DNA from: Calcarisporiella thermophila CBS 279.70
Lineage: Eukaryota; Fungi; Calcarisporiellomycota
Direction: 5' to 3'
Length of the DNA: 64,000 nt
Assembly: GCF_041956535.1 (NCBI RefSeq)
Contig: NW_027192194.1
Span: 217,444 to 281,443, forward strand
Shown: positions 12,909 to 18,045 of the stretch, piece by piece
How the letters are laid out: every line of letters begins with the position of its first letter
How positions within the stretch are numbered: position 1 is the first letter of the stretch
Position numbers and translations under genes: made by a program
The notes under the pieces: generated by a model
Databases searched by the model: none
Seen by the model: the letters and a program-made list of their open reading frames with translations, nothing else
What the model was told of the DNA's origin: nothing

Positions 12909-14571
12909 ATGGGGTCCACGGCGAACACATCACAGCAGACCGCAGAGTCTCAACCCGCCGAGGAATGCCTCGAGGAAAAATCCGATGTGGCGGTGGCCGA
13001 GAAGGGCGAAGCCGCAATTCAGGAGTACCCCCCCGATGCACTCTATGGGTGGTTCGTCGTCGTGGCCGTGTTCTTTCTGGCCTTTTACCTGTTCGGTCTG
13101 GCCACCAGCTGGGGCATTTTCCAGGTAAGGCGGCGGGTGCGAGAAGCCTCTGGTTCCGGCCTTAGCTTAACGAACGCATTCTCTCTTTTTTTCTCTGTCG
13201 CTCCCTCTCCACAGGATCTCTACTCGAGGGACATCTTCCATGGCCAGGAGCCCCTCATCTCCATCTCCTATATCGGCAGTCTGGGCAATTCGCTTATGTA
13301 TTTGTTTGGCCCCATAAGCGGAGTGGTGGTGAGCCGCATTGGCAACCGCAGCCTGCTCTTGGTGGCCTCGCTCCTCCACCCATTGGGCATGATCCTGGCC
13401 AGCTTCTCCACCACCGTGTGGCAGCTCTACCTCACGCAGGGCTTGCTGGTCGGGCTGGGCAATGGCTGCGCCTTCTACGGCGGCGTCATCATGACGCCGC
13501 AGTGGTTCGAGCGGTACCGCGGCCTTGCGACCGGGATCGCGGTGTCGGGGTCGGGATTCGGGGGGCTGGCCCTCGCCCCGCTGACCCGAACCCTGATCGA
13601 TCGTTTGGGCCATCAATGGGCCCTCCGCATTCTCGGGCTCATTGGCTTCGTTATCATCTTCAGCAGCTCCTTCGTCCTGCGCCCGAGAATCCGGCGCCCT
13701 CCTTCCCGACGCCCGGGTCTCTTCCACTACGGCTTCTTCGACAAAAGATTCGTCCTGTTGATGCTCACCGGCTTTTTCGCCATGCTTGGTTACTGGCAAC
13801 CCTACTTCCTGTTGCCCAGCTACGCTGTCGCCACCACCGGCCTCACTCCACAACTTAGCGCCGTGTTCGTGGGCGTGATCTCCGGGGTGAACTCCGTGTT
13901 CCGGATCGTTTTGGGAGGGTGCGCGGATTGGCTGTAAGTAGCTGCTTGGCTGAGCGTCTCGGTCTCCCCCTGCTGACCCCCCCCCCCCTCTCTCTTTCTC
14001 CCCCCATCTAACTTGCTCGTATGCAGAGGTAATACCAACGTGCTTGTGTTCTCGCTACTGGTGACGGCCATCTCCATCCTCGTCTTCTGGATGCTTGCAA
14101 AGTCGTTCGCCTTCTTTGTTCTCTTTGTGATAGTGTATGGGACAAGTTCAGGTAATAGACCCTTTCCCCATTGCTTGATAGAGCTTGATGTCTCACCCGG
14201 CTTTTCTCCTTTTCTTCCTCTCAGGCGGATTCATCAGTCTATTCCCGGTGATCATTACTGAGCTTGTCAAGCCAGAGGACGCTCCCGCAGCCTTTGGTAT
14301 CGCCTTCTTCTCGTACGGAGTGGGCTCCTTACTAGGCCCGGGCTTCTCTGTGCTGCTGAAGGCTTCCAATGGGGGCGATCTCGGAAGTATTCTCTTTGCC
14401 GGACTGTAAGTACGCCAGCGGCGCGTGTTTGTATGTGATGCTTTTTCATGGACACACCCCTAATCTTCTCTCTTTCCTCTTCTTCCTCGTTCCAGTGTCT
14501 CGCTAATGGCGGCCTTCACCGCTTTAGGTTTACGGTGTATCAAGAGTCGTCGATTGTTTGTAAAAGTCTAG
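12909..14571 (+). CDS. MFS monocarboxylate-porter family transporter (Mch-like, 5 exons)
   Basis: PPDALYGWFVV, WQLYLTQGLLVG, QWFERYRGLATGIAVSGSGFGG and multiple TM helices. Ends LFVKV*. Confidence 0.9.
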
Positions 14572-14930
14572 AGCTGCATTGGGCTGTACATAATACTCAA
14601 TCGATATCGGTGTCCTCCCTCCCCATCCCCTCTGTATCATACACCATAGACCTCCATCTTCAACACATATACGCTTATTTATTTATTTATTTATTTTATT
14701 TTATTTTTCCTTCTCTCTATAATTCCTTTAACTCGACTCGATGGAAAAAAAAAGATAAAACTAGGCAACAATGGCAATATCATTACAAAACGGAGGAAAA
14801 AAAAAGTAGTGTGAAACAAAAAGGAGAATAATAATAAAAAAAAAGAAGAAAAAGTGGCATAAAAGAAAAGAAATGAAAAAAAAAAGCACGCGCATGCAGA
14901 GAGAGAGAAAAATGGTAAGCGCAGTTTTGT

Positions 14931-17900
14931 TTATAGCCCCGAAAGAGTTCCCGTGCCATAGATGGCCGGCACCGCCAGGCGCTTGTTCTTGTAGTCGGCC
15001 AGTCCGCGACAGGGCACCTTGCCTCCCACCGTGGCGATGGGCTTGCCGGCGGGAGGGTTTTGTGCGGCAAGTCGCATCGTGTTGAAGCCGGTTTGGTCGC
15101 GGGGCTGGACCCGAAACTCGCACAGCGGGCACTGATACTTGGCCTCCGCGTCCTCCACCAGCATCTCATACAGCTCAGGCGTAAGCTTCTCGTCGCACTT
15201 CAGATGCACCCAGCGGTCGCACTGGTCACAGCACACCATGTCGTCCTCCTCGCCCATGTCATCCTCCCCATGGTAGGTCTTCAGGCACACCGGGCAATAG
15301 CGGCCCTGCTCGAAATCGTCGGAGCACCGCTTGCAGTACGTCGCAAGATAGGTCGGGTAGCGGTTGTTGGAGGTCGGGGGGGCCACCGCGTGCTCGAACT
15401 GGTCTTCGGTCAGCGAGGCGTCGTCCAGCTCTTTATTTTCGCACGAATGGCACCGGGCACAGAGTCGGCACAGCCAGCGGCCTATGAAGCAAGATGAGCG
15501 ATGAAGATGGAGCTCACGGCAAGAGCGGGATCGTATCAGCAGACAAAAAAAAAGGGGCCGGAACTTTACCTTGTGGAACCTCCGTGACCACCGGGTCGCA
15601 GCAGTCCGTATGCCATCCGCGGTCACAGTCGTCGCAGATCATCAGCTTTGACTCGTCGCCCGAGGACTTGCACACGACGCAGATCTTGCAGTCGGTGCAT
15701 ATCCACGCAAAGCTCTCAATGGCCGAGACCACGCGTGGCGTTGTGAGGCCGAGGCAGAGCGGGTGGTACGACTGCTGACACTTGGCACATTTGACCATGT
15801 ACAGCATCGAGCAGGCCGGGGTCTCGTTCTCGGCGACCACCGTGGAGGGGGCCGTGAGATAGTGGCAACTTGCACACACGTTGCTGGCGTAGGCAGGGTT
15901 GACCGGACCAACCGGGGCGGATGTCTGACAGAGGGAGGGGCGGGTACACAAGACAGGGTTAGGTTTGCCGATATTCGGGAACGAGGGGGAGAGAATGAGG
16001 ACGTTACCTTTTTAACTTCGGAAGTAGGGGTGGAAGTGGCGGCGGGGGGGATGGATCGCATTGCGTGCATGATTTGCGACGGAGGTCCTTCGGGAAGATA
16101 CTTGTGGTTCATACATCGCTCTCCAGGGCGTGTCACCGGACGCCTGCACGGCTGTTTCTTATTGGTTGGGACCCCGCATTGATACTGGGACTGTCGGGTG
16201 GGGGTGTGCATCGACATCGGCGGCTAGAGATGCATCCAAGCATGAGAATGGGTACGGCCCCAACGAAAATGAGAGGGGAGATGTTACCGTATTTGAGAAT
16301 GTGTTTTGCTTGAAGGAATAGGGCGTCGGGGCCTGCTGCAGGGGGGGATTCGGGGGGGGCTGAGTGTTCGGGCGGCGGAGCATCTAGGCTGGGAACACGG
16401 GCATTTGGTTGCGGTGCGGGTGGTGCACGATTGAATCGTTCTCGGTGGCTTTTTTCAAATAATAGGAAATGAAAGGAAAAAAAAACAGAGAATTAAGACG
16501 GGAACTGGAGAATGTATTGAGAGCGATTCAGAAAGAAAGTAAAGTATTACATTGGAAAAACGGACTGGTATTGGCCCTTGAGGACGGCAATCGGATATCG
16601 GAATGGGTCGTCTTCCTCAACCGCGGAGTTGTAAATCAAGCCATTCACCTGGACGTGCTTGTGGATTTCCGGCGGCAGCACATCTTTCAACTCGGCCAGC
16701 TGGTCCTTGCTGAGCTGCAGTGGGGGGGCCGAGGGCTCAATGGCAACCGAAATGGGCTCCACCACCGCTGCACCCTTGGTAGATCCTGCGGGAGGGAGGC
16801 GCTCCACCCGAAACGAGGTCGGCTGAGTGGCTTGCGGCAGCTGTTCCACGTTCGTATGCACATCGTAGTACCTTGGCTTTTCCAAGCGCATATATCGAAG
16901 CCGAGTGTTGAATTCTCGAGCGGAAAGCGCGGTGTCGTAGATCCAGAATTCCGACCTCACCCCTCTGGTACCGCCGCCGAAAAGATTGTGCCGCCCCCCG
17001 CCCATACCAGCCTCTGCGGCGCCGGCCTCGGCCACCATCTCTCCCTCACGCACGAATCTGCGCTCTGTCCTCTTCTCCTTCTTCCGGTACATTTTTTTCC
17101 CAAAGTATTTATACAGCTTACGAGTGGGCACAATGGCGACCCCACGGCCACGCAGATTCGCCGCTATGTAGCCAGAGCTGATCAGATACTCTTTGTCCTC
17201 GGGTGTCGCTTGCGTGCGCTTGATCGTCGGGTTGTGCATAAAGAAGAGGTAACTGTCGCGGAAACCAAGAATTTTGGAGGCATCTATCGAGAGCATGTAC
17301 CAGCGGCTCCCCTTGCTTGGCACTTGGAAAACAGGCCCCTTCCAAACCCGTGCTACAAAGTCCAAGGAGAAAAAAGTCAGTCAGCCCATCCACCACTAGA
17401 ACAAAAGAGCGTTTTCGGTGCCCCCCTTACAGCCAAGCAGCTCTCCATCGCGCGTGATAATTTTTTCCCCCATCTCATCCACATCGCTCTCCTCCTCGCT
17501 CTCCTCCTCCGCTTCCTCATCCACCGACGCCTCCCCCGCCAGCGACTCTGCTCCTTGCTCCTCCATCTTCCCATTGGCGGTTCCTCGTCTTGGTCGCTTT
17601 CTTAAACTCGATTCCTTTGCCGAATCCTCCGCGGTGCTATTCTCCGGCTCCTCATCCACCACGGCACGCTTTCTCCCCCTGCGCGGCCGAGCCTCCTCCG
17701 ATTGCTGTTGCGCCTCTAGCCCCCTTCGTACCAGGCGAATGATTGGGCCTCGTTTCCGCGGTGTGCTCACTGCAGACGAGTTTCCGTCCGATGGTGGATC
17801 TGTGTAGGTGTCGGTGGCATGAGTATCATTCACATTATCATGTGAACCGCTCGCATAGGATGGGTCGTCCTCCTGGTCCATATAGCCGGATTTGCGGCTT

Positions 17901-18045
17901 CGCCTTTTCCGTGGAGAATTGAGGGGGGAAGGGGTACTCCTTCCTTTCGCTGGATCATATTAAAGCAAAGGAGTAAGAATAATATACAGTGGAATTAACC
18001 GCACCCATAGGGCAGAAAAAGATCAATCATACCAGATCGTGTCAT
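14931..18045 (-). CDS. Chromatin-remodelling subunit with an Rsc7/Swp82 (CRC) domain, PHF10/SAY-like motifs and tandem PHD fingers; frame discontinuity near 16160-16450
   Basis: CRC motif GEKIITRDGELLG..YMLSIDASKILGFRDSYLFF. PHF10-like AREFNTRLR..YYDVHTNVEQLP and YPIAVLKGQYQ. DPF motif HPLC..WICTDCKICVVC..CDDCDRGWHTDC. Extra PHD YCPVC..CDQCDRWVHLKC. The start exon is inferred at 18045. Confidence 0.75.

Follow-up and report, generated by a model that had tools for sequence, protein, structure and literature searches.

A probable SMARCG locus of Calcarisporiella thermophila carrying a CRC domain, a Req/eReq-like anchor and three PHD fingers

Previous studies united yeast Swp82/Rsc7, the animal DPF/PHF10 proteins and plant TPF by common ancestry in one family of remodeler subunits, SMARCG, in which the Dikarya, budding yeast among them, lack tandem PHD fingers (Commun Biol 2022, PMC9170682); a review table likewise pairs Swp82/Rsc7 with DPF/PHF10 (PMC7445562). 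Structural work has since described the CRC domain as a winged helix like the PHF10 SAY region, a Req/eReq anchor common to Rsc7 and PHF10, and the Req helix as a structural anchor in all SMARCG members (Sci Adv 2026, PMC13580576). The link between Rsc7 and PHF10, the absence of PHD fingers from Dikarya, the finding that CRC and SAY are winged helices and the common Req/eReq anchor are therefore already published. Here, we describe a locus on the minus strand of a 64,000-nucleotide window from contig NW_027192194.1 of Calcarisporiella thermophila CBS 279.70, which is very probably the gene of a SMARCG subunit of SWI/SNF-family chromatin remodelers; its product would be part of such a complex. 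The first-pass annotation had proposed a PBAF-like histone-reading subunit that joins features of Rsc7/Swp82 and PHF10, with the PHD fingers having been lost in yeasts. Our results support this proposal, with the subunit being of the PBAF/RSC type and the PHD-less yeast proteins derived, but earlier work had reached it already: the locus is an unremarkable member of the known SMARCG family and carries little weight as a discovery, since its main links are published.

Gene structure and the one-base frame break

The gene extends from an ATG at 17881 to 14931 on the minus strand and consists of six exons, as judged from open reading frames and sequence, with a predicted product of approximately 844 residues; the range 14931-18045, as first described, covers the stop codon through the 5' flank. 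Exon 1 (17431-17881, ending in phase 1) encodes an N-terminus of low complexity, acidic/basic in composition, and the initial CRC residues (…GEKIITRDGELLG), and is identical to residues 1-150 of the database protein P0001; in homologs, the junction between exons 1 and 2 reads …KITKDGELLGGR…. Intron 1 (17353-17430, 78 nt, GTAAGG…TAG) was read from the sequence, and its splice is used in P0001, which is 100% identical to the product of exons 1 and 2. Exon 2 carries LGFRDSYLFF, the SAREFNTRL...HTNVEQLP stretch (16817-16945) and YPIAVLKGQYQ (16565-16597). It is followed by intron 2 (16449-16550, 102 nt, GTAATA…AAG), a linker exon (16288-16448, 161 nt) and intron 3 (16224-16287, 64 nt, GTAACA…TAG), whose splice is used in P0159 (C. 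thermophila VTP21DRAFT_8357). A TAG at 16224-16226 closes the zinc-finger frame on its upstream side. Exon 3 (16008-16223) contains the CCCH zinc finger, and exon 4 (15570-15924) the double PHD finger (DPF); they are separated by intron 4 (15925-16007, 83 nt, GTAACG…CAG; P0159 junction …EVKK/TSAPVG…). Intron 5 (15482-15569, 88 nt, GTAAAG…TAG; P0159 junction …VPQG/RWLC…) precedes exon 5 (14934-15481; stop codon at 14931-14933), which encodes CARCHSC...CDQCDRWVHLKC and comprises the end of PHD2, a Cys4 knuckle (C-x2-C-x2-C … C-x2-C), a third PHD finger and a conserved C-terminal tail (GGK-x3-RG-x3-YK … VP-x-I). P0159 is 100% identical to exon 5, and its sequence covers the exon 3-5 junctions. 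Searches were run exon by exon or with P0001 and P0159. All of the motifs listed by the first-pass annotation proved to be present on the minus strand, and their Pfam and solved-structure scores show that none is a chance match.

In the public annotation, the locus is split into two 'uncharacterized' proteins of 418 aa and 405 aa, because the CRC half and the PHD half lie one base out of frame within the linker exon. The 418-aa protein terminates at an in-frame TAA (16547-16549) inside intron 2, and the annotated start of P0159, the PHD half, is an ATG at 16383. Splicing from 16551 to 16448 yields …SVFP-I-HRERF…, in agreement with the FP[IV]H-x2-RF consensus of the family, which occurs in 13 fused homologs; the family motif FP-I-H-x2-RF thus lies beyond the annotated stop once intron 2 is spliced, and many database fragments of SMARCG homologs end at this same intron 2 point. 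The 5' part of the linker exon is open solely in the frame that continues exon 2, and its 3' part needs the next frame to reach the donor GTAACA at 16287 in phase 0. We enumerated GT/GC-AG splice-site combinations locally, across 16150-16620, and checked their reading frames. In the sequence as it stands, the phase of the consensus donor at 16287 is off by one base, and the two halves are joined solely by weak or non-consensus sites. The linker region was found once in the assembly, without a haplotig or other copy. The linker exon contains homopolymers (C8 at 16352-16359 and C7 at 16341-16347), and the frame break is probably an assembly error in the length of such a C run and not a real split, because the orthologs are fused and the splice-junction motif is conserved.

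If the sequence is correct, a one-base change would have produced a PHD-less Rsc7-like protein (exons 1-2 and the linker exon, then a short out-of-frame tail) and a triple-PHD protein that is either expressed separately or decaying. Such a split agrees with the assembly as it is, with the two public gene models and with the second frame opened by the ATG at 16383; PHD-less Rsc7/Swp82 are functional in Dikarya (PMC9170682), and Tetrahymena SMARCG may be partitioned into SAF2, with the Req helix, and SAF5, with the triple PHD (PMC13580576). However, we consider a real split unlikely: the break falls in a 161-nt exon with C8 and C7 runs, a classic assembly-indel site; the second start is found 65 nt into an exon that encodes protein in a different frame, which leaves no room for a promoter; and the PHD half is undecayed, with every zinc ligand and invariant residue retained. 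Moreover, all other early-diverging fungal orthologs with a full model are fused, and the contig of the nearest relative has CRC and PHD open reading frames on the same strand, approximately 1.1 kb apart. Still less probable is a correct sequence that is spliced unconventionally, for example, through a weak donor GTTGGG at 16264 that gives a 41-nt intron and keeps the frame, or through an isoform switch that yields a short and a long protein. The in-frame paths that we enumerated do retain the conserved I-H-R-E-R-F junction, and isoforms that contain the DPF and isoforms that lack it are known for PHF10 (PMC8538644), but the other donors of the gene are all GTAA, with which GTAACA at 16287 agrees, a 41-nt intron is far below the 64-102 nt of the other introns, and the added residues have no counterpart in homologs. 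With a homopolymer error as the favored cause of the break, one gene is recorded as two 'uncharacterized' proteins, and we flag this probable mis-annotation here, along with the many SMARCG database entries that are cut at the same intron.

Whereas the genome holds two SNF5 paralogs, it has a single CRC locus, a single Req-like locus and a single triple-PHD locus, and only one SMARCG gene was detectable; the genome scan gave no detection of the Req domain PF14051. A weak INI1_DNA-bd match on contig 38 was considered as a second SMARCG and rejected, as the protein is Mbp1/Swi6-like with ankyrin. Because two SNF5 paralogs exist, the one SMARCG gene may serve both SWI/SNF and RSC complexes.

CRC winged helix and the PHF10-like middle region

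The CRC domain (PF08624; 17078-17347, minus strand; Pfam E 6.6e-20) scored 72.3 bits against a gathering cut-off of 25, and 74.3 bits in the genome scan; as a single sequence it matched Rsc7 among solved structures at E 3e-16. Its AlphaFold2 model (pLDDT >95) takes the form of an INI1/DHD-type winged helix, though an atypical one. The top structural match of the model is the N-terminal winged helix of human SMARCB1 (6lth_M; Z 10.6, rmsd 2.6 A, 80 residues), followed by 5aj1 (Z 8.7), Dachshund, SKI-like and BCOR structures, and in the ESM Atlas a PHF10 cluster is the second nearest structure; a search of the Atlas by features gave no usable match. The SMARCB1 match came from an exhaustive aligner, and Foldseek with the N-terminal model returned nothing at E <=0.001. 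PF21459 (INI1_DNA-bd) was found below threshold in 27 of 87 CRC domains (best E 4.6e-4). A CRC-only profile of 87 sequences retrieved neither PHF10 nor SMARCB1 from the solved chains, only DNTTIP1 (E 1.3), so the link of CRC to PHF10 and SMARCB1 rests on structure and on the sub-threshold Pfam matches.

Downstream of the CRC lies the Req/eReq-like anchor (16817-16945, minus strand), a helix W-x2-x-A-x4-FN-x2-L-x3-R followed by YYDVHTNVEQLPQATQPT, which aligns with PHF10 198-237 and with Rsc7. AlphaFold2 predicts the Req helix at model residues 135-156, and PF14051 (DPF1-3_N) was detected below threshold in 5 of 23 relatives. The motif YPIAVLKGQYQ (16565-16597, minus strand), in which P, Q and Q are invariant in 23 homologs, is the counterpart of PHF10 YPVALIPGQFQ. 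The first-pass annotation had equated both motifs with PHF10 and had set the absence of a profile match to this region as grounds for abandoning the idea. With a single sequence, the match to human PHF10 was weak (E 0.14); with profiles of fungal homologs that were free of PHD fingers, it was found at E 1.5e-6 and E 8.7e-6, which bears the equation out. In the latter, two colinear stretches match PHF10, the second being YPIAVLKGQYQ on PHF10 250-266, and PHF10 ranks above S. cerevisiae Rsc7 (8e-5). The fungal middle-region profiles did not match DPF2, which agrees with the eReq (RSC/PBAF) type of PMC13580576. A middle-region search with the chytrid protein P0066 returned two proteins and the A2 profile search four, which were fungal; the search with the PHD-cassette profile A4 returned 29, and all of those with a named source were fungal.

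The likeness of the middle region to PHF10 could also reflect convergence or chance, with fungal Rsc7 having gained its PHD fingers by domain shuffling. The single-sequence E of only 0.14 would fit this explanation, as would the fact that PHF10 is out of reach of the CRC-only profile. We regard it as highly improbable, given that the profile values of 1.5e-6 and 8.7e-6 come with two colinear stretches in the order and spacing class of PHF10, that both proteins have the same fold class upstream and a DPF downstream, and that independent structural work arrived at the same match between the Req/eReq segments (PMC13580576).

The CCCH finger and the triple-PHD module

The CCCH zinc finger (C-x9-C-x10-C-x2-H; 16104-16178, minus strand, within exon 3) is conserved across 39 instances that share invariant C, C, V, G, C and H. 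Of 32 relatives, 17 had a PF09329 (zf-primase) match at E <=1 (best E 2.5e-6), and one relative, P0063, exceeded the gathering score (30.5 bits vs 28.8); the C. thermophila finger itself had no PF09329 match, and a zinc-finger profile found no relative among solved structures. An assignment of the motif as an SCA7 domain was rejected, as the match spans only 18 residues (E 0.005-0.014).

Pfam gave three PHD matches in the C-terminal half, with E 4.6e-13 (in exon 4) and 4.2e-6 among the scores. The DPF-type nature of the double PHD finger, recognized in the first reading of the sequence, holds at the level of solved chains (DPF3, E 8e-19; PHF10, E 1e-14) and of structure: its model matches DPF2 (5vdc) at Z 14.1 and rmsd 2.4 A over 108 residues with 38% identity, and Foldseek gave E 2e-9 to DPF3b bound to H3K14ac and an integrated double-PHD fold with TM 0.75-0.80 (by target) to DPF3b, DPF2, MOZ and MORF. 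The last cassette had been likened to KMT2A PHD3, and MLL1 PHD3 is indeed its best solved chain (E 1.4e-9), with 41-43% identity and Z 4.2. The four-residue cage of MLL1 PHD3 consists of Tyr1576, Tyr1581, Met1585 and Trp1594 (PMC8022399); identical residues occur at three of the four aligned positions of the third PHD finger (Tyr1576, Met1585 and Trp1594), and Tyr1581 aligns to Glu. The zinc ligands, the Met and the Trp are invariant in 25 homologs, and C. thermophila retains each of the 26 residues that are invariant in the PHD cassette. A model of the double PHD, knuckle, third PHD and tail formed one compact unit (pTM 0.84, tail pLDDT >90), and these parts are predicted to fold as one rigid unit. 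No bromodomain, such as makes up the PHD3-Bromo cassette of MLL1, was found beside the third PHD finger in exon 5 or in homologs, where a short conserved tail is present instead. The first-pass annotation had also held that this locus adds an MLL/Trithorax-type PHD finger. A PHD3-like finger is present, but it is no addition here, for it is conserved in early-diverging fungal homologs; the idea that it is special to C. thermophila was rejected because the knuckle-plus-PHD3 cassette occurs in at least 19 early-diverging fungal cluster representatives.

Proposed role and comparison with known systems

As solved structures of RSC, PBAF and BAF suggest, the Req/eReq segment would have two docking sites within the nucleosome-binding lobe, namely the SNF5-type subunit, through its RPT1/2 repeats, and the SWI3-type subunit, through its SWIRM domain, and the winged helix would adjoin the nucleosome. 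By analogy of fold and residue conservation, the PHD module may read histone H3 tails, with the DPF reading acylated H3K14 and PHD3 methylated H3K4, and such reading could keep the remodeler at the nucleosomes of active promoters. Throughout early-diverging fungi, the family has the CCCH finger, the MLL1-PHD3-like finger and the tail, which bears on the reader module of ancestral SWI/SNF. As a tentative proposal, which we hold somewhat less probable than its alternatives, the ancestral opisthokont and perhaps eukaryotic SMARCG had a winged helix, Req/eReq, a CCCH finger of DNA type and a rigid triple-PHD reader that ended in a finger of the KMT2A PHD3 kind; PHF10 would then have lost the CCCH finger and PHD3, DPF1-3 the winged helix, and Dikarya all fingers. 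If this is true, PHD triplets are not an invention of animal KMT2, contrary to PMC9813062, and a remodeler and a Trithorax-type methyltransferase share one inherited H3K4me3/H3K14ac reading cassette. The thermophilic source could also suit structural work on a full-length PHD-bearing SMARCG.

Early-diverging fungal SMARCG proteins, of which Rhizophagus irregularis and Rhizoclosmatium globosum 'Rsc7' are examples (Hernandez-Garcia et al. 2022), are built in the same order: the CRC is followed by the Req-like motif, YP-x-AL-GQ-x-Q, the CCCH finger, the DPF, the knuckle, PHD3 and the C-terminal tail. The fused architecture was found in homologs from Rhizopus, Mucor, Phycomyces, Gigaspora, Racocetra, Basidiobolus, Anaeromyces and Chytriomyces, and identities to early-diverging fungal homologs range from 31% to 39% over the N-terminal half (A1) and from 32% to 50% over the PHD cassette (A6). 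C. thermophila differs from them in its split models and in the one-base frame break of its assembly, and its nearest relative, on a metagenome contig, is only 42% identical. UniRef names the Rhizopus homologs 'PHD finger protein 10'.

Human PHF10/BAF45a (Drosophila SAYP), of PBAF, has the INI1-type winged helix, a homolog of the N-terminal domain of INI1 (Allen 2015), and Req/eReq, YP-x-AL-PGQFQ and DPF in the same order (PMC4509781, PMC13580576), but lacks the CCCH finger, the third PHD finger and the conserved tail; its winged helix has neither the N-terminal nor the C-terminal extension seen in the CRC form (PMC13580576), and outside the motifs its sequence identity to the C. thermophila product is undetectable. 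S. cerevisiae Rsc7/Npl6 and Swp82, and also C. thermophilum Rsc7/Snf59, share the CRC (E 3e-16 with a single sequence, 5.6e-49 with a profile) and Req/eReq, whereas yeast Rsc7/Swp82 end without a zinc finger or PHD finger; the claim that the budding-yeast proteins lack PHD fingers accords with the report that Dikarya lack them (PMC9170682). Yeasts have two paralogs, one per complex, compared to one detectable gene in C. thermophila.

The double PHD finger of human DPF1-3 (BAF45b-d) is the closest solved structure to that of C. thermophila, and DPF1-3 likewise have a zinc finger between anchor and DPF and a weakly detectable Req helix; however, they lack the winged helix and the third PHD finger, and their central finger is Kruppel C2H2, not CCCH. 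KMT2A/MLL1 PHD3 shares the Tyr, Met and Trp of its H3K4me3 cage with the C. thermophila finger, in which Tyr1581 is replaced, and in MLL1, too, PHD2 and PHD3 are presumably separated by a Cys-rich knuckle. Unlike KMT2A/MLL1, the C. thermophila locus has neither a following bromodomain nor a SET domain. Plant SMARCG, named 'TRIPLE PHD FINGERS', adds a Tudor-like domain and lacks the CRC; by their descriptions, plant TPF1/TPF2 and Tetrahymena SAF5 are comparable to the C. thermophila product as SMARCG-class proteins with three PHD fingers (PMC9561266, PMC13580576).

Gene structure and the annotated split

By sequence reading, the gene runs on the minus strand from an ATG at 17881 through exon 1 (17881–17431), intron 1 (78 nt, between 17431 and 17352), exon 2 (17352–16551), intron 2 (16550–16449), a 161 nt linker exon (16448–16288), intron 3 (16287–16224), exon 3 (16223–16008), intron 4 (83 nt, between 16008 and 15924), exon 4 (15924–15570), intron 5 (88 nt, between 15570 and 15481), and exon 5 (15481–14934) to a stop codon at 14933–14931, with GTAA at the donors of all five introns. 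The 3′ flank (14500–14930) is AT-rich (GC 0.39 vs. 0.55–0.63 in the gene), contains long T and A runs, and has the appearance of unremarkable intergenic or UTR sequence. The first-pass annotation read this locus as one gene, whereas the public annotation of C. thermophila (phylum Calcarisporiellomycota) has two. We ran searches on single exons or on the two database proteins. An exhaustive protein search with exon 2 recovered P0001, the annotated CRC half (418 aa), with 100% identity over exon 2; its printed sequence opens with the exon 1 ORF. The PHD half, P0159 (405 aa; VTP21DRAFT_8357, “uncharacterized protein, Calcarisporiella thermophila” at NCBI), was found by a PHD-cassette profile search. 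By BLASTP, exon 5 is 100% identical to P0159, whose printed sequence spans the junctions of exons 3/4 and 4/5 as well as the latter half of the linker exon.

Whichever candidate donor is used, exon 2 ends in phase 2. Joining 16551 to 16448 gives …GQYQSVFP-I-HRERF…, which fits the consensus FP-[IV]-H-x2-RF of 13 fused homologs; because this splice restores the consensus, coding runs past the TAA that ends P0001, which falls within intron 2. Many database fragments of the family stop at the same point, in what looks like systematic truncation at a conserved intron. P0001 and the homologs P0002, P0004, P0009, P0030, and others terminate with …P-M or a comparable residue immediately beyond GQ-x-Q, where the conserved intron starts AT/GTAA and gives an in-frame stop (16547–16552); since the intron itself supplies this stop, ORF-based or intron-blind calls are systematically truncated.

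The frame breaks further downstream. The zinc-finger exon (exon 3) starts in phase 0 and is bounded at 16223 because an upstream TAG closes its frame. Phase 0 at the consensus donor (16287) requires the P0159 frame, which is used from an ATG at 16383; a TAG immediately before this ATG closes the frame. Given the donor phase and the TAGs, the 5′ end of the linker exon codes in one frame and its 3′ end in the next, and the switch must lie between 16383 and 16288, an interval containing a C8 run (16352–16359) and a C7 run (16341–16347). The break is probably an assembly error in the length of a homopolymer run. The assembly holds no second copy of this region. A real split of the gene in two, as the public models have it, appears unlikely; the PHD half is free of decay in a 25-sequence alignment, all full-length orthologs are fused, and the CRC and PHD ORFs share one strand on the nearest relative's contig. 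Enumeration of GT/GC-AG combinations that join the halves with the conserved junction kept yielded weak donors only (GTTGGG at 16264, which implies a 41-nt intron; GTACCC at 16255; and GC donors), and unconventional splicing is an improbable account.

The CRC domain and its relation to PHF10

All motifs listed in the first-pass annotation were found in place on the minus strand. Exon 2 contains PF08624 CRC_subunit (E 6.6e-20) and matched Rsc7 of solved RSC complexes (E 3e-16); the C-x9-C-x10-C-x2-H motif is in exon 3; the double PHD in exon 4 has DPF3 and DPF2 as best solved relatives (E about 1e-18; PHF10, 1e-14); and the third PHD in exon 5 has MLL1 PHD3 (E 1.4e-9). These exon-by-exon tests bear out the relatives named in the first-pass annotation (Rsc7, a DPF-type double PHD, and MLL1 PHD3).

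No match between the CRC part and PHF10 was obtained by sequence. An AlphaFold2 model of the CRC domain (pLDDT above 95) found its best structural match in the N-terminal winged helix of human SMARCB1 (Z 10.6, rmsd 2.6 Å, 80 residues), and also matched 5aj1 (Z 8.7), followed by Dachshund, SKI-like, and BCOR, with DNTTIP1 lower down (Z 3.6). This is the very set of folds described for the INI1 domain, which is homologous to the N-terminal portion of the SAY domain in PHF10 (Allen et al., 2015; PMC4509781). In agreement with this relation, PF21459 INI1_DNA-bd was detected below threshold in 27 of 87 CRC domains, and in the ESM Atlas (query residues 153–244) the nearest structure was fungal RSC7 and the second a vertebrate PHF10 cluster.

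The first-pass annotation had also proposed a PHF10 match for the middle motifs, which our profiles confirmed. A single-sequence query reached PHF10 at only E 0.14, yet in three colinear pieces, whereas a PHD-free alignment of 23 homologs, from the CRC domain through the GQ-x-Q motif, gave E 1.5e-6 against human PHF10; a second profile, limited to the middle region, ranked PHF10 (E 8.7e-6) above S. cerevisiae Rsc7 (8e-5). The matched stretches are an FN helix followed by …D-x-HT-x-V-x-QVP (PHF10 198–237) and the YP-x-AL-x-GQ-x-Q motif (PHF10 250–266). The FN helix also gave sub-threshold matches to the N-terminal (Requiem) family of DPF1-3 in 5 of 23 relatives. The wording closest to PHF10 (AAEFNS-x-L, FPVAL-x-PGQFQ) occurs in two chytrid paralogs of Irineochytrium annulatum, P0054 and P0066, whose models have no PHD finger; that of P0066 may be truncated, as it ends in a CCCH-like motif.

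Family standing and genome context

The interpretation linking Rsc7 to PHF10 is thus supported, and it is already published. Swp82/Rsc7 were paired with DPF/PHF10 in a 2020 review table (PMC7445562), and these proteins and plant TPF were assigned a common origin as SMARCG, with tandem PHD fingers kept by most non-Dikarya fungal homologs and Req plus CRC in some (Hernandez-Garcia et al., 2022; PMC9170682). In 2026, cryo-EM work on Chaetomium SWI/SNF and RSC described an extended Req (eReq) common to Rsc7 and PHF10, the CRC domain as an atypical winged helix, and the SAY domain as a winged helix (PMC13580576). Rhizopus and Mortierella homologs are already called “PHD finger protein 10” in UniRef and NCBI. 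Because these links are in the literature, our structural and profile results re-derive known relations, and the locus is an additional, probably mis-annotated member of the SMARCG family.

The 28.2 Mb genome (116 contigs) contains one CRC locus, one Req-like locus, and one triple-PHD cassette, and thus one detectable SMARCG gene, against two SNF5-family genes (C2:902564–903239 and C18:210687–211610; loci L003–L007), presumably of Snf5 and Sfh1 type; the genome scan gave no Requiem Pfam match. A single gene fits the state without duplication into Swp82 and Rsc7 noted for some fungi (PMC9170682). Two remodeler complexes may share a single reader subunit, or a further SMARCG gene may be so divergent that it escapes detection. 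A weak INI1_DNA-bd match (E 0.002–0.009) was seen at locus L002 (C38:32231–35395; minus-strand ORFs 1036–1923 and 2132–2836) in a DUF7593 protein, adjoining ankyrin repeats; the protein is probably an Mbp1/Swi6-type factor, and the match is consistent with the structural relationship already known between the INI1 winged helix and Mbp1.

Zinc motif, PHD module, and proposed mechanism

The motif C-G-x7-8-C-[RK]-R-x-V-x3-G-[ED]-x-C-x2-H was kept in 39 instances. PF09329 (primase/Mcm10 zinc finger) matched 17 of 32 relatives at E up to 1 (best 2.5e-6), one of which passed the curated cut-off, and the copy studied here gave a short SCA7 match only (E 0.005–0.014). A zinc-finger profile found no relative among solved structures. 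A role in DNA binding is putative; DPF1-3 have a Krüppel finger at this place.

The knuckle and third PHD are kept in at least 19 cluster representatives. The 25-sequence alignment shows no variation at any zinc ligand or at the Met and Trp that match Met1585 and Trp1594 of the MLL1 PHD3 cage (residue list in PMC8022399); MLL1 Tyr1576 aligns with Tyr, and Tyr1581 with Glu. Identity to MLL1 PHD3 is 41–43%. A model of P0159 residues 100–405 was confident (mean pLDDT 87.7, pTM 0.84), including the conserved C-terminal tail (above 90), so a single rigid unit made up of the DPF, knuckle, PHD3, and tail is predicted. Its DPF part matched DPF2 (Z 14.1) and H3K14ac-bound DPF3b (Foldseek E 2e-9). The tail (GGK-x3-RG-x3-YK-x4-VP-x-I; 14934–15100, exon 5) is conserved in most homologs, and its modeled beta strands pack on the PHD cluster with pLDDT above 90.

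The domain set and its relatives are established here; the mechanism is a proposal. By analogy with solved complexes, the Req/eReq segment would anchor the protein within the nucleosome-binding lobe, on the subunits of SNF5 and SWI3 type, with the winged helix beside the nucleosome. Judged by fold and residues, the DPF would read acylated H3K14 and PHD3 methylated H3K4, and the CCCH finger may touch DNA. Combined, these contacts would keep an RSC/PBAF-like remodeler at the nucleosomes of active promoters.

The third PHD had been taken as added at this locus; instead, it is a family feature of early-diverging fungal homologs. Plant SMARCG proteins are likewise triple-PHD, with a Tudor-like domain at the position of the fungal tail, and Tetrahymena SAF5 has three PHDs (PMC13580576). 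PHD triplets were described in 2023 as exclusive to the animal KMT2 proteins, KMT2A-D (PMC9813062); the DPF-knuckle-PHD3 cassette of fungal SMARCG and the plant TPF proteins are counter-examples.
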